Shown here piece after piece: positions 44,396 through 52,144 of a stretch of DNA of 64,000 nt. The position numbers were made by a program, and so were the translations under genes. The DNA lies in the NCBI RefSeq assembly GCF_000315625.1, contig NW_005434645.1, positions 295,925 to 359,924 on the forward strand, in the 5' to 3' direction. The notes under the pieces were generated by a model that was not told where the DNA came from, did not search any database, and saw only the letters and a list, made by a program, of their open reading frames with translations. Each line of letters opens with the position of its first letter. The first letter of the stretch is position 1. Source of the stretch: Guillardia theta CCMP2712 (lineage: Eukaryota > Protista > Cryptophyta).

Positions 44396-44408
44396 GGAAG
44401 GTACAACC

Positions 44409-44620
44409 TCACGACGATCGCGGTCATTGTGAAACTTGCGGAGGAGGTTTGACTCGAACTTCTTGGGCTTGGAGAGCTTGAAGCACATCAGCTTCCTGAA
44501 ATGCTTCTCCCCTCGCGTCAGGCCGGACGCGATCCCGGCTCCGATGTGAATCATCGGAGCCTCCTGCCCGCACGCCATCCCACTCGCCACCGACAGGATC
44601 GTCCCGACGACCTTGACGAA
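44409..44620 (-). other. Isolated exon of a CLC chloride channel/transporter (CLC-6/7-like), truncated by a gap
   Basis: FVKVVGTILSVASGMACGQEAPMIHIGAGIASG...FHNDRDRRE corresponds to the CLC GxEGPxxH motif and the FRNDRDRRD segment; no flanking CLC exons visible. Confidence 0.8.
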
Positions 44621-44895
44621 NNNNNNNNNNNNNNNNNNNNNNNNNNNNNNNNNNNNNNNNNNNNNNNNNNNNNNNNNNNNNNNNNNNNNNNNNNNNNNNN
44701 NNNNNNNNNNNNNNNNNNNNAGAGAGAAGAGAGAAGAGAGAAGAGAGAAGGGGAGAGAAGTGAAGTAAATAGGAGAGAATATGTGAATACGTTGAACGAT
44801 CGCATCTTGGGAGGAGCGTGCTAGACGGCAAGCTGTATGTTATATCGAGGTCAAAGAAATGGACCTCAAAGTAATGTTTGTTGCCAGGGATTAGC

Positions 44896-47091
44896 ATGCC
44901 TGTCTCTGTTCAGCTCCTGGAAGCGTTGGATGACGCCTGCAAGGAAGAAGACCAGGAGAAGATCTGCGACGTGCTGGACAGGCTGCAGGAGACCGACCTG
45001 GACGTTGACTTCATAGTGAAGCATGTGGGAAAGAAAGTGAAGCTGCTGAGGACGCACTCGAGCGCGGAGGTGAAGAAGAAGGCAGTGGCCCTGACGCAGT
45101 TCTGGAAGGAGGTGGTCAAGAAGAAGGTGGAGTCGAGCGGGAAGGGGAAGGGGAGAGCGGCGGTGAAGGTCAAGGAGGAGGAAGTGAAGCAAGAGGGTGA
45201 GTTTGTGCCTCCTCCGCCGCGTCTCTTTGTTGTTGCACGTCCTCCCTCCCCTCCCTCCCCTCCCCCTCGCCTCACATGCGCTCGAGTGAAGTTTCTCGTT
45301 TTTCTCCAGCTCCCGTTGATTTTGTGTGTGCTGCGCTCAAACGTCAACGATCGTTTCCTCTCCGCTCCTCTCGCTCGTTGCGACTGTGTAGACCCTCCCT
45401 GGTCCTGTACTTGGCTGCTCTATGTTGGCCTGGCACGGACTCTTACACCAGCACGCACCATTTCTTCTCTGCAGTTGATAATGCGGCGAAGATCGGCAAA
45501 GACTCGATCGAGAGATCGGGGAAGATCGCGGTAAGGAGGAGGAGGAGCGGAAGGAGGAGAGGCAGGAGGAGGAGCGGAAGGAGGAGGGGCTGGAAGAGGA
45601 GGGGCAGGAAGAGAGGTAGGAGGAGGAGGAGGAGGAGGAGGAGGAGGAGGAGAGGCGAGGAGGAGGAGGAGGAGGAGGAGGAGGAGGAGGAGGAGTAGGA
45701 GAGGCAGGAGGAGGAGGAGGAGGAGGAGGAGGAGGAGGAGGAGTAGGGGGGGCAGGAGGAGGAGGACGAGAGGCAGGAGGAGTGCCTTAACGATTCCTGC
45801 AGGTTCTCCCGGAAAGAACGAGGGCAATCAATCACAAGAATGTTGAATCCTGTCCGAAGGGGAAGCCTGTCGTTTACTGGATGAGCAGGTAGGAGGGAGA
45901 GGTAAAGGGGAAGGAGGGGGGATAGAGAGAGGAAGGAGAACTTTCAACTCACAGACAGTTTGCAGAGATCAGCGGGTACAAGACAACTGGGCTATGCTGT
46001 ATGCTCGCATGCGAGAGGAGAACGATCTCTGACTGTCGTCTCCTCCTCTCTAGTTATGCTCAGCAACAAGCCCTGGAGGCCGGTGCCCCCCTTGCTGTCT
46101 GCTTCAACCTCGTCGACTCGTTCCTTGGGGCCGGGCTGCGGCAGTTCGGCTTCATGCTGCGCGGGCTGAAGGAGGTAAGAGGAGGAGGAGGAGGAGGAGG
46201 AGGAGGAAGGAGGTGTGGGTGGTAGCGAGAGATCAGACAGGTCAGAGATGGTCATCTTGAAGTAGAGGAGAAGAGAGAGAAACTGAGGAGGTAGGGCGAG
46301 ATTAGATGAGAACTCAAACAAGATTTCTGAGCTGTCATTGTTCACAATGTCATGTTGTGTCAGATTCGTCCCTCCTCCTCTCCTCCATGACCGTTGCTGA
46401 TGTTGGTGGGGACCAGGTGGAGGAGGAGCTGAAGGAGCTGAACATTCCTTTCTTCCTCCTTCGGGGAGACTGCGTCAAGACCATCCCCAAGTTCGTCAAG
46501 GACAACAACGTTGGCCTCGTGGTCTGCGACTACAGCCCGCTGAGGATGGGACGAGAATGGTGAGGAGGGAGAGGTGAAGGAGGAGTAGAGGTGGTGGAGG
46601 AGACCAGAGAAGGGAGGAGGAATCTGCTNNNNNNNNNNNNNNNNNNNNNNNNNNNNNNNNNNNNNNNNNNNNNNNNNNNNNNNNNNNNNNNNNNNNNNNN
46701 NNNNNNNNNNNNNNNNNNNNNNNNNNNNCAAAGGCATCACCCCCCGTCCACCCCCAAGAGACAGACGCCCACGAGTTCGGGGAGAAAAAAGAACCGCTAG
46801 TGTGACCGGCTCTTACTCTCCTCCTCCTCCTCCTCCTCTTTTCTTCTCCAGGTTCCAGTTTGGGTTGCGTCCGACAAGCAGGAAGTGGGGGCAAGAACCC
46901 TCCGCCCGAAGATTCACAGGGTGAGATGCGTATCCTGCCCGTTCTTCTCCCTCTGAACCCACATCCTGCAGCTTCTCCCCAAGTTCCATCAGAACTTTCC
47001 CGCCGTTATGTCACATCCTCATCCTTGGAAGACTTCTCCTCCACCTACTGGTGACCTCAAAACTCCTTTCTCCTTCCCCCCATTCCTATCA

Positions 47092-47185
<94 letters not shown>

Positions 47186-49215
47186 TCTCCCTTATGAGTT
47201 GTGAATCTCATGTTCTCCTCATCGTCATTGTTCCTCGCAGATTTCGAGGCTGCCCTAAAGTCCCTCAAGTGCGACGAGAGCATTCCAGAAGTCACGTGGG
47301 CGGTGAGTCCGCAGGAGGCAGGAGGCAGGAGGGATGAGTGGGTGAGGAGCGAGGAGACAGAGAGGACGGAAGGGAGGAGGACGAGGAGGAGGAAACAGGA
47401 AGGGAACAGGAAGGAAGGAGAATAAGGAAGAGGAAGAGGAAGAGGAGATTGCCAAAGAATTCAGCGGTCTTCGCTGATTTTTCAGCAGAAACCCGGGTCA
47501 GCAGCAGGCCTTGAGAACCTCTCCAAGTTTCTCATGCAAAAATTCAAGAACTTCAACACCAAGAGGTTTTCTTTCCCTTCCCTCCCTTCCCCCTTCGCCT
47601 TCGCCTTCCCCTTCCCATCCTCCTCTTTCTTGTACCATCCTCTCCCCTTCTCCCCCCTCTCTGTTCTCTTCCTGCGTCCTGACGGCAGCGGGCGAGCAGG
47701 AACGACCCGAGCGAGGAGGTTCTGTCCGACATGTCCCCCTGGCTTCACTTCGGCCAGGTGGCGCCGGCGCGATGCGCCTTGGAGGCGAAGAGCTTCTCGA
47801 AGATGCACTCGGAGAGCTACGCGAGCTACATCGAGGAGCTGGTGGTGAGACGAGAGCTGAGCGACAACTTCTGCCACTACAACAAGAAGTATGACTCGCT
47901 TGAGGGGTGCGCGGGGTAAGACTCCTCTTCCTCCCTCTCGAGCCTGCTCCTGCTCCCGCTCCTGCTCCTGCTCCTGCTCCTGCCTCTCCGTTCTCGTCCT
48001 CATCCTCCTCTTCATCCTTCTGCTTTCTCCCGCTCATTGTCTTTTCTTCCTCCTGCTCCTGCTCGCTTTGCTCCTTCTCCTCTTACTTTTGCATCAGGTG
48101 GGCCCAGGAGACTCTCAAGGTGCATGCGGGCGACAAGCGCCCTCACGTCTACTCGCTTGCGAAGCTCGAGGAGGCGAAGACCCACGACGATCTCTGGAAC
48201 GCTGCACAGCTCGAGCTGGTGCACAGGTGGGAGAGGAGAGGAGAGGAGAGAAAGGGAGCAAGAAAGAGGAGGTGAGGATGGAGAAAGACGTCAGGAAAAT
48301 AATAATGTGCATCGTTGAAGATGGAGATGGGGAAGGGAAGGAGGAATGAAGAAGGAGGAGGACGGGGACGGGGACGAGGACGGGGACGAGGACGGGCAGG
48401 AGGAGAAGGGCGAGGAGGAAGGAGGAAGGAGGAAGGATCATGACTTGGAAGCAGGGGGAAGATGCATGGCTTCATGAGGATGTACTGGGCTAAGAAGATC
48501 CTCGAGTGGACCTCGTCGCCGGAGGAAGCGCTCAAGTTCGCCATCCTGCTCAACGACAAGTACAACCTTGACGGCAGAGACCCCAATGGCTTCGTCGGAT
48601 GGTGAACCTCCTCCCTCCTCTGCACGGCCTCCCTGCTCCTCCCTCCCTCCCTCCCTCTCCCTCCTCCTCTTGTCTCCTCCTCACTTGTGCTCTCAGCATG
48701 TGGTCGATTGGTGGCGTTCACGACATGGGGTGAGGCGGCGTAGTAGCAGAGGGAGGAGGAGGAGGGGAAGAAGGAGAAGGAAGATGAGGGAGGGGGATAG
48801 AGAGGAGGGGATGACGATTGAGCAGATGGAAGGAGAGGCCAATCTTCGGCAAGATCCGCTACATGAACTATGAAAGTTGTAAGCGGAAGNNNNNNNNNNN
48901 NNNNNNNNNNNNNNNNNNNNNNNNNNNNNNNNNNNNNNNNNNNNNNNNNNNNNNNNNNNNNNNNNNNNNNNNNNNNNNNNNNNNNNNNNTCCTCCTCCTC
49001 CTCCTCCTCCTCCTCCATCCTGCTTGCCTCCTCTGCCGCTGTCTGCACGTTCCTCGTGCTATCCTTTGCCTGTGCTCTGATCTCCCTCCTCTCTCCTTGC
49101 CCTTGCTGCTCTCTTGCTGCCTCTCACTTCCACTTGCCTTCTCCTCACGGCGAGCATGCAGTATGTCAACAAGATGAAGCAGCTGGTTGCGACGGTGAAG
49201 AAGGTCAAGACTTGA
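44896..49215 (+). CDS. PHR1: Class II CPD photolyase fused to an N-terminal TFIIS-N (TND/LW)-like domain
   Basis: Photolyase exons: [133 protein letters not shown]. Exon 1 (44896-45196) encodes a TND-like helical domain. Two internal gaps. Confidence 0.92.
47092..47182. repeat. (CCTGCT)n intronic microsatellite
   Basis: About 15 perfect hexamer units. Confidence 0.95.
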
Positions 49216-49285: not shown

Positions 49286-52144
49286 TCACGCACACCCCAA
49301 CGAGTTCCTTGCAGACCTGCGGAATGCAGTTACATCATCATCGTCGTCGTATATGATCATCTATCCACATCATCCATCCGCATCATCAGACATCGTCATC
49401 ATGATCATCATTATCAACAACATGCAGCGAACAAAGTAAACCTCGTCGTGATCATTCGGAACTGAGCTTCCTGTGCAAAAGAAGACGATCAGTTCTGCTG
49501 GGTCTCAAGCATCCAAGACTCTCAACCTGCGAGAGAAAGTCTGCGTCCTTCAGTACCTCGAGGCAGTCCATCCTCCCCTGCGATGCGTAAGGCCAGCATG
49601 AGAAGGAGGAGGAGGAGGAGGAGGAGGAGGCGGAGGCGAAGGAGGAGGAGGAGGAGGAGGAGGAGGAGGAGGAGGAGGAGGAGGAGGAGGAGGAGGAGGA
49701 GGAGGAGGAGGAGGAGGAGGAGGGACTAACAGAAAGATCGTTCACAAACTTCAAAACGCTGTCAAACTCCATGTCCTGCAGAGATCGCATCAGCACCATC
49801 AGCTCCCTCCTCCCTCCTCCCCATCACCTCCTCTATGATGTTAGCCTTGTGCTTGCGTAAGATGGCAAGGGCGACGAACAGGTGCAGATCTTGCCCTCTG
49901 ACTCGACTCCAGAACGCCTCCCAGAGTCGAAAAACGTCTTGCAGCCCAAACTCTCTCTGTTGCACGAAATTATCAGCGCAGGTGGACGGTGGCGGGAGGG
50001 AGTCACCTTGTAGATGATCAGCAGCCACCTGAAGCAAAAATAGAAGTTGGAGCAATCTTTCCTCTCGAGATGGTCGTACAACTCCGGCTCAAGATCCTGC
50101 GATGCACTCGGTAAGGCAAGAGAAGAGATAGGCAACTTGACGTTAGAAAGGAGGGGAGGGTAGGGAAGAGGAGAGAAGGGGGGAGAAGGGAAGGGAAGGA
50201 AATTGTTTCTTCTTTCCAAATCCTGACATGGTCCAGGATCTCACCTTACACAGAGTATTAATCGTCTGCAACTGTGTATGCATCCCATTCTGATCTTTGT
50301 GGAAATTCGGCTCCATGAGATCCATCAACTTCTGAAAGCACCAGAAAGCCTCGACCTGCACCATAGTCAGCGCCTGATGGCAGCACTTCAGTCCTCAACG
50401 GACCTCATCCTCCATAACAACAAGTAGAGGAGCTGCCAGGTCGCTCATTCCCTGGGGACTAAGTCACTTCACATGGAGCAATGCTGCGGGCTAACTTGGC
50501 AGTAGGAGAGGTCGAAGTTGTAGAAAGAGTAGGTCAGGAGAATGCGGTAGAGCTTTTGCAGCCCATCGCCATTGTCGTCCACAAAGATGTCAATACTTCG
50601 ATCAGTGCGGATAACGTCCTTCTCGATCCTGTGCCTTCGATCTCTGAATTTCGAGAATCTCGATTCCTAAAGAAACAGAGATCAGGCCTTCAAACCCAGC
50701 AGCAGAAGACTGACTACCTGGTCCGCTGTTATGCTTTCCCACTGGCGCCGGTATGCTTCATACTCCTTCGCCTTCTGCGATAGGAGATGTTCGCGATCCT
50801 TCCTCGTTGAGTTCACAGGATAACATCCGAGAAGCCATTTCCATCCCTCCCGCCGAACGTTTGGAGCAAAACCGCCATAGAAAGCTCTCCTCCTCAACTT
50901 TTGGATGTCTCGGATCCTGCGATTCCGTCAGCTGCTGGAGTCACGCATGCCTGGAGGAGCACCTTCCATTGGTCTCGAAAAAACCTCTGAATTCAGCTTC
51001 TTCTATCAGGCCTTGGTCTTCCCATGGTAGAGGCTCGTGCTCCACAAAGACACATTCATCATCCCCACATCTGACTTCATTCGCCTTCGAGGAAGGACGA
51101 CTGCCAGCTGGGTGATGATGAGCCTCCGAAGGCAGAGGCATGGTCGAGGCTGGAGGATCCATCTGATCGAGAAGTTCCGCAGCACTCGCTGCCACGTCGC
51201 TTGCTACAGCACTCGCTTTCTTCCAGCCTGATCGTAAGCCTTGCATCACGCGAACGCCTCCCTGCAGGTACCTCCACTGCCATTCGCCTCCTATCTCCCG
51301 ACTCCATTCTAACTCATCCCCGTCAATCTCTGCCTGGCATTCAGGAGTGCTTGGCTTCGTCGGCGCTCTTGATCGAACAACGCCAGGAGAAGACTGGACC
51401 ATATCCAATCCGTGCAAACTTCGTTGGAGCATATTCGAGCTATCATTCACAAGGAGCGTCGAAGCATCGGCATCACATCGAGTCAAGGTAGCATACTGGG
51501 ATAACTTGCAGTCACTCTCACACCTTTCACAGGGAATCATTCACCTCCTGCAACTTGTTTTGAAACTCCAAAGCGCGGCCAGAGTGGAAGAACATCGGAG
51601 GGTGGGAACACCCGCTTCGCAGGTTGAGGATGACCTGTACAGTCCTTCAGTGAAGGACTTGCAGATTATGGAGAGACCTGTGGCGTTCCCAGGGACGGTC
51701 GGATGAGACGGATGGAGTAGATCTGAGATATGTGCGTGCAGATGGCGTACTGGAGATTGCTGACCGCTTTAGTTGCAGCCTACAGTGCAGCCGCTTTCAC
51801 CTTCCCAGCATGACGAAGAGAGTTCATTCATCACCTGATTCGGGTCGTCCGTTGGATTCCAAACGATGTAGACGGATTGACCTTCATCTTCAACCCTGAT
51901 CGAGAGGCTTCCGAACATCGGCGAGCAGCTCTCACTTATCTGTGAAGCTTGAGGTGAGAAAGAGGCACGAACGGCAGCTGGCAACAGGTTGGACCTGTAT
52001 GTATACAGACTTGTTCTGCCACTTGATACTCTCTTTGCCTGGACAATTCCTGTTTCCTGGAGCACACCACTCTCCACCACTGCTCTCTCCTCCGCCATCG
52101 CTACCGTTGACCTCCGCCCAATGCTCCTCTATGCAGTCTGCCAT
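49286..52144 (-). CDS. TBC-domain Rab GTPase-activating protein, TBC1D15/17 (Gyp7)-like
   Basis: AFYGGFAPNVRREGWKWLLG, IEKDVIRTDR (Arg finger), YCQ/GMSDLAAP (Gln finger), EAFWCF, YFCFRWLLIIYK/REF, VFRLWEAFWS. Confidence 0.9.

Follow-up and report, generated by a model that had tools for sequence, protein, structure and literature searches.

TFIIS N-terminal domains (TNDs) are non-catalytic scaffolds that bind TND-interacting motifs (TIMs) of IWS1, LEO1, PAF1 and other proteins and hold them near Pol II (PMC9987994). The TND review reports that mutations in this domain of human TFIIS affect nuclear localisation, and the members covered by a 2023 review of the domain are transcription, chromatin and phosphatase regulators only, with photolyase unmentioned. 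In yeast, repair of the transcribed strand by photolyase is poor, with a stalled Pol II sitting over the dimer as the probable reason, and which proteins relieve this block is an open question (PMC12153352). Here we describe a gene of the cryptophyte Guillardia theta CCMP2712 that connects the two subjects. It lies in a 64,000-nucleotide stretch of eukaryotic, intron-rich nuclear DNA with a G+C content of ~53% (contig NW_005434645.1, positions 295,925 to 359,924; hereafter the window), and joins a TND-encoding exon to a class II cyclobutane pyrimidine dimer (CPD) photolyase. The best overall explanation, which we hold with about even confidence and by analogy with other TNDs, is that the product would be a nuclear photolyase concentrated on the elongation complex.

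One spliced mRNA joins an N-terminal exon to a class II photolyase

The main start codon is the ATG at 44896, with an in-frame stop, the TAA at 44872, ahead of it. Exon 1 ends GAG G/gtgagt at 45196 in phase 1 (slashes mark exon borders). Exon 2 is bordered by ctgcag/TTGATAAT...ATCGCG/gtaagg (45475-45530), and exon 3 opens cctgcag/GTTCTCCCGGAAAGA at 45803, leading into PVVYWMSR. The frame through this path is open, and its first in-frame ATG after M1 is the Met codon of YWMSR. RNA evidence was taken from transcript contigs of three runs (X3, X4 and X8), which represent three studies and two organism labels. The contigs cover 44770-45195, 45474-45529, 45802-45884, 45962-45998, 46054-46167 and 46415-46564, and the joints 45195/45474, 45529/45802, 45884/45962 and 45998/46054 are all GT..AG, at depths of 47, 60 and 100. 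As they lack introns, they derive from spliced RNA. A further RNA run (X21) was sampled as raw reads, and none of the ~6% of the run that was examined aligned to the stretch. The main mRNA thus specifies a single polypeptide comprising a TND of ~80 residues, a basic linker of ~60 residues and a complete class II photolyase. The initial annotation had proposed this in-frame splice, free of gaps, stops or alternative ATGs, from the letters alone; the three assemblies use the same splice sites and join both of the junctions it had singled out for checking by RNA (45196/45475 and 45530/45803).

A homologue search retrieved the corresponding NCBI entry, hypothetical protein GUITHDRAFT_162898 [Guillardia theta CCMP2712] (P0019, 505 aa), which UniRef names 'Deoxyribodipyrimidine photo-lyase'. 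Residues 1-235 of P0019 are identical to the spliced translation of the window, and the protein threads onto the window as 14 GT..AG exons without mismatch, the first at 44896.

Sequence and predicted fold together make a sound case that exon 1 encodes a TND, as the initial annotation had suggested. Pfam PF08711 (Med26/TFIIS helical bundle), whose PROSITE counterpart is PS51319, matches residues 26-74 over profile positions 2-52 of 52, with E 3.9e-4 and a score equal to the curated cut-off (20.6 bits); related proteins score 32.9 (P0049), 23.4 (P0014), 22.3 (P0001), 21.5 (P0008) and 20.8 bits (P0010). A profile built from 13 photolyase-linked N-termini, with no TFIIS sequences in it (profile A2), was run against all PDB sequences and matched 12 chains, all of them TNDs, with E-values of 1.1e-5 for Elongin A, 1e-4 to 1e-3 for TCEA1 and 2e-3 to 5e-2 for PPP1R10. 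Invariant residues among the 13 N-termini include L27, G45, V48, K49, L51, R52, V59, A63, L66, W70 and K71, of which G45, V48, L51, R52, V59, A63, L66, W70 and K71 align with identical residues of human TFIIS (TCEA1). L27, V48, L51, A63, L66 and W70 make up a hydrophobic core with the L...W ('LW') signature, aligned to TCEA1 positions.

An AlphaFold2 model of the exon 1 product predicts helices at residues 3-16, 20-32, 37-51 and 57-81 (predicted local distance difference test score, 69), in keeping with the compact bundle of four to five helices that characterises TNDs. Its best Foldseek matches are the human TFIIS LW domain, the integrase-binding domain (IBD) of LEDGF, a yeast LW domain and the PPP1R10 TND. 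VIA alignment to the yeast TFIIS LW domain (7faw) gave a Z of 10.9 and a root-mean-square deviation of 1.9 A over 79 of 84 residues, with Z 9.9-10.1 to the MED26 and PPP1R10 TNDs, and the nearest three hits of a shape search in the ESM Atlas were TFIIS, Elongin A and plant TND clusters. A PF08711 search of the G. theta assembly (87 Mb, 669 contigs) returned no match; it also missed exon 1 itself and the controls, and is hence uninformative on absence.

Class II CPD photolyases include the rice (3UMV) and Methanosarcina mazei (2XRY) enzymes, Arabidopsis UVR2/PHR1 and Chlamydomonas PHR2. On sequence grounds the catalytic part of the G. theta protein is an orthodox member of this class with predicted repair activity, in agreement with its original assignment. 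It aligns to 3UMV with E 1e-115 and to 2XRY and 8OET with E about 1e-108, and the homologue encoded at environmental locus L012 gave 4.6e-152 in a full-length class II comparison. PF00875 scores 79 bits in P0019 and 30.7 bits on exon 6 alone, and the WNAAQ-type and other motifs of the flavin adenine dinucleotide (FAD) half are conserved. The 3UMV alignment also keeps a W-21-W-7-W spacing at the positions that we take to be the class II tryptophan triad.

Other photolyase-family loci were seen in the G. theta genome. A second, divergent class II-like locus (G000:C70:229000-230800; L018:2984-4795) encodes a protein 26-30% identical to the L012 enzyme, and at least four further PF00875 loci lie on C54, C11, C61 and C25.

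Occurrence of the fusion in other organisms

Searched exhaustively with HMMER, exon 1 had 17 matches. Five environmental loci (L001, L011, L012, L013 and L016) have a TND exon immediately 5′ of a class II photolyase, both on one strand, and the photolyases of these loci are close to the G. theta enzyme. P0049 carries both the Med26 domain, at 32.9 bits, and the photolyase in a single open reading frame (ORF) of 462 aa. P0049 and P0019 both fall in one ESM Atlas cluster of 105 proteins (593-aa representative) that is eukaryotic, with Chlorophyta as the commonest phylum; PF00875 is found in 100% of its members and PF08711 in 94%. Relatives carrying the fusion, for which the initial annotation had advised a search, are thus present. 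Since the fusion is kept among cryptophyte-like algae as well as in a large cluster of mostly green-algal proteins, sequence comparison indicates that it is an old, selected architecture, neither specific to Guillardia nor an accident of annotation.

An assignment of the P0002/P0004/P0008 group to the prasinophytes was considered and dropped, as their photolyases are close to that of G. theta; we call them cryptophyte-like, with the taxonomy unproven. When the N-termini of P0019 and P0049 served as queries in region-limited searches for homologues, they retrieved only themselves, the sensitivity of these word-based searches being too low.

The architecture had been put forward as unfamiliar. 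This holds for the literature that we searched, in which no description of a TND-photolyase was found: photolyase/cryptochrome family surveys mention no TND, and papers that pair class II photolyase with TFIIS are, by their titles and abstracts, general repair reviews. It does not hold for the databases, where the fused gene model already stands as the uncharacterised prediction GUITHDRAFT_162898 and the 105-member Atlas cluster collects proteins of the same kind.

Two further observations concern the relatives. The species represented by L011 and its transcript contig L021 has a 455-nt GT..AG intron in the 5′ untranslated region (UTR) of its TND-photolyase gene (L011:512-964). A transcript-like environmental contig with UTRs (L019:73-1092) encodes, in one ORF, a photolyase-type TND and a NADAR domain (PF08719, 6.5e-13). 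The TND of this protein, P0014, shows 39% identity with G. theta exon 1; by eye, it differs from that of P0015 by few residues. By its predicted domains P0014 is a second enzyme bearing the photolyase-type TND; a NADAR match to it was sought in G. theta and none was found.

Intron 1 and the gene model

Intron 1 contains a conserved, signal-peptide-like stretch with the look of coding sequence, which the initial annotation missed and which suggests a second isoform with another destination. The length of the full G. theta intron (278 nt) cannot be divided by three, and an alternative acceptor at 45310 restores the frame. A minor X8 contig uses it, joining 45195 to 45309 at a depth of 4.2 vs. 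100 for the main form. The retained sequence (45310-45474) encodes a basic stretch, a hydrophobic core, PGTDS/Y (slash, putative cleavage site) and THHFFSA, followed by VDN of exon 2, and is a candidate signal peptide and start of a transit peptide. An in-frame ATG within the intron, 56 codons before the putative cleavage site, could start an isoform that begins with the signal peptide if transcription starts inside intron 1.

In several of the exon 1 HMMER matches the ORF of the TND continues across the intron and into exon 2, and their intron translations resemble each other and that of G. theta. P0001, an 85%-identical relative, reads through intron 1 likewise (its source contig was sought and not found). 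The stretch is conserved in P0001, L011, L012, L013, L001, P0018 and L016, and eight homologues have a common layout: a basic segment comes first, then a core of 9-16 hydrophobic residues (mean Kyte-Doolittle 1.7-2.95 in an 11-residue span), with position -1, and in most cases -3, taken by a small residue and position +1 by Y or F. The putative cleavage site is S/Y, C/Y or S/F in all eight. All eight also show the n, h, c pattern of a signal peptide, although it is internal in the sole transcript that includes the stretch. The transit-peptide-like region of G. theta (50 residues) has a net charge of +4, with Ser and Thr making up only 16%.

The nucleotide sequences bear the marks of coding DNA. 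Upstream, no stop interrupts the frame over at least 72 codons in 6/6 loci with DNA. The CAyCAyTTyTTy motif varies at third positions only, an indel measures 9 nt, and differences at codon positions 1, 2 and 3 number 112, 90 and 136. In L011, L012 and L013 the whole intron (351, 273 and 396 nt) is a multiple of three and open in the TND frame; shuffled introns were open in 1-11% of trials, giving a joint chance of ~1e-6 when shared ancestry is ignored. The stretch is single copy in the G. theta genome.

Proteins imported into the plastids of cryptophytes and diatoms are characterised by a signal peptide with an aromatic residue (F, also Y or W) at the +1 position behind it (PMC4329603), and for this reason a splice switch between nucleus and plastid is proposed. 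Removal of intron 1 would yield the nuclear TND-photolyase, and retention of its 3′ part (45310-45474 in G. theta) or of the whole intron (in the relatives) would supply an internal cleavable signal and a transit peptide with aromatic +1. The long form would then deliver the photolyase half into the complex plastid and leave the TND behind, such that the TND would mark the nuclear form. That intron 1 is an exitron-like coding intron serving as a splice-controlled address switch is a tentative reading, to which we give somewhat less than an even chance. If it is true, one gene serves two genomes, and an alga with four genomes supplies two of them by splicing.

Several observations count against the switch. 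Besides the internal position of the signal in the only transcript that includes it, a nearby in-frame Met is present in only some species. Metagenome contigs were scanned for exact matches to a pattern of the L011 signal-peptide-coding stretch, which yielded only two more genomic contigs and no transcript, and RNA including the intron 1 stretch was found from no second species. In addition, L001 has the conserved CACCATTTCTT nucleotides in another frame, and given this frame CACCATTTCTT may be an element that acts at the nucleotide level. The idea that CACCATTTCTT, which precedes the exon 2 acceptor, is a splice signal only was rejected, being countered by the third-position variation, the 9-nt indel, hydrophobic swaps and the open frames.

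The remaining features of the gene are listed in Table 1. Two assembly gaps, 46629-46728 and 48890-48989, conceal exon sequence. The GUITHDRAFT_162898 model crosses the first from a wrong donor at 46521 (into 46852) and ends prematurely at 48730; exon 6 is longer in transcripts than in this model, to about 46559, and homology adds two exons beyond its end (48826-48889 and 49162-49215). At the first gap the contigs of all three runs have a loose end at 46564, and L012 reads QWREGVGACIQPV at the corresponding position. The 5′ leader holds four upstream ATGs (region 44781-45014). The one at 44837 opens a 59-codon upstream ORF, which runs past the main start in a different frame. Long (GGA)n and (CTC/CTG)n microsatellites crowd the introns and flanks (45531-45802, 46175-46205, 47095-47185 and 49600-49725). 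On the minus strand, 44400-44620 reads GQEAPMIHIGAGIASGL, which we take to resemble a CLC chloride-channel motif; it probably belongs to a neighbouring gene with divergent transcription, which the gap at 44621-44720 interrupts.

Table 1. Features of the TND-photolyase gene, in window coordinates
Feature	Position	Strand	Remarks
5′ leader of mRNA	44770-44895	+	X3 and X4 contigs begin at or before 44770
Exon 1: start codon, predicted TND helical bundle (residues about 3-81), Lys/Glu-rich linker, phase 1 end	44896-45196	+	
Intron 1, main isoform	45197-45474	+	278 nt, GT..AG; joint 45195/45474 in three runs
In-frame ATG inside intron 1	45276-45278	+	56 codons before putative cleavage site
Alternative 3′ splice site extension	45310-45474	+	165 nt = 55 codons, in frame with exons 1 and 2
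Exon 2, linker in TND isoform; would be transit-peptide-like in long isoform	45475-45530	+	
Intron 2	45531-45802	+	Filled with (GGA)n microsatellite
Exons 3-6, alpha/beta DNA_photolyase domain	45803-45888, 45966-45998, 46054-46174, 46417-46559	+	Joints, translation, PF00875
Assembly gap hiding at least one exon	46629-46728		Transcripts go on with GVGKAIAPV, absent from window
Photolyase exons	46852-46920, 46972-47050, 47241-47302, 47489-47565, 47700-47915	+	P0019 threading; tblastn with L012 photolyase
Photolyase exons	48098-48226, 48455-48601, 48697-48729, 48826-48889	+	Last one enters gap 48890-48989
Last coding exon, then stop	49162-49215	+	

Proposed role and comparison with known systems

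Because TNDs are non-catalytic and dock TIMs of elongation factors, the TND of this protein most likely keeps the photolyase in the nucleus and on the elongation machinery. It would dock the short acidic-hydrophobic TIMs of the Pol II elongation factors IWS1, SPT6, LEO1 and PAF1, and K49, R52 and K71 could form a basic patch that reads acidic motifs, as in other TNDs, where such a patch and two hydrophobic pockets make up the TIM-binding site. The enzyme would be retained in the nucleus and concentrated on the elongation machinery, and blue-light repair would reach transcribed DNA, the place at which photolyase is otherwise impeded by stalled Pol II.

Several points weigh against this proposal or the domain assignment beneath it. 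The PF08711 score of exon 1 is borderline. Foldseek E-values for the model are weak (0.08 or more, with none at E 0.001 or better), and HEAT and ARM repeats equal TNDs in VIA scores. In the transcript contig L021 the TND is out of frame with the photolyase. Finally, a plain role in import or retention explains the fusion equally well, given the link of the TFIIS TND to nuclear localisation.

This last point defines the strongest alternative, that the TND is a module for nuclear import, retention or stabilisation, with the basic linker as a nuclear localisation signal (NLS) and no coupling to Pol II. Beyond the TFIIS mutants, it draws on the Lys-rich linker and on the apparent presence of an alternative organelle signal in the same gene, which would make the N-terminus a mere address label. 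A short NLS would suffice for this purpose, yet distant algae have retained a folded TND, including its conserved core and basic residues, and the occurrence of the same type of TND on the NADAR enzyme P0014 suggests a recruiting role. We regard simple import or retention as a serious alternative, if a less likely one.

The union of a flavoprotein photoreceptor fold with a domain that docks on the transcription machinery could instead indicate a cryptochrome-like, light-sensing regulator of transcription that is not mainly a repair enzyme, and bifunctional family members are reported in algae. This is improbable: the catalytic part has very close matches among proven class II repair enzymes (E 1e-115), the presumed tryptophan triad keeps its spacing, and no signalling class II enzyme is known.

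It is slightly less probable still that, in some species, the TND frame is a separate upstream ORF that overlaps the photolyase frame and regulates its translation. This possibility arises from L021, a 2.2-kb transcript contig 100% identical to the genomic locus L011, which joins the TND exon, exon 2 and the full photolyase. It has six G residues at the exon 1/exon 2 junction (300-360) vs. five from the canonical GT..AG splice of L011 (1185-1590), so that the TND is read in frame 3 but the photolyase in frame 1, and ATGs in the photolyase frame are present at the end of exon 1. The difference is one G in a G5-6C7 run and may be a homopolymer error; a canonical 351-nt intron in L011 would be in frame, the three G. 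theta assemblies are in frame, and a single ORF spans both domains in P0049 and in the Atlas cluster. Finally, an artefact of gene prediction or assembly, which the downstream errors of the NCBI model (gap jump and 3′ truncation) might bring to mind, is refuted for G. theta by independent transcript contigs spanning exons 1-6, and the arrangement is conserved in other organisms, leaving it a negligible chance.

On the reading that we prefer, a nuclear photolyase concentrated on the elongation complex, the protein can be set beside four groups of known systems. It shares with TFIIS/TCEA1, Elongin A, PPP1R10/PNUTS, MED26, IWS1 and the LEDGF IBD the TND profile, the predicted helical bundle and the L...W core with basic residues, but unlike the members of this family its TND is attached to a DNA-repair enzyme; it would be the first TND linked to an enzyme, all known members of the family being regulators. 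The catalytic part resembles rice 3UMV and Methanosarcina mazei 2XRY in its PF00875 domain and FAD-half motifs, and differs in being preceded by an N-terminal TND and linker of about 140 residues; in the papers searched, no characterised photolyase is described with a TND. The intron 1 stretch is similar to the bipartite topogenic signals of cryptophytes and diatoms (ASAFAP-type) in its basic and hydrophobic segments, small -3/-1 residues and aromatic +1, and tentatively in a net positive, hydroxylated stretch. It differs in that it lies after the TND, is N-terminal in no transcript and is removed as an intron from the main mRNA. Like CSB/Rad26, UVSSA, ELOF1 and bacterial Mfd, the TND-photolyase would bring repair to lesions met by RNA polymerase. 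It has no homology to these factors, and would act by light-driven direct reversal as opposed to excision, with recruitment through an elongation-factor docking domain and not a translocase. A natural photolyase with the type of docking domain that Pol II elongation factors use is a ready-made test case for repair of the transcribed strand.
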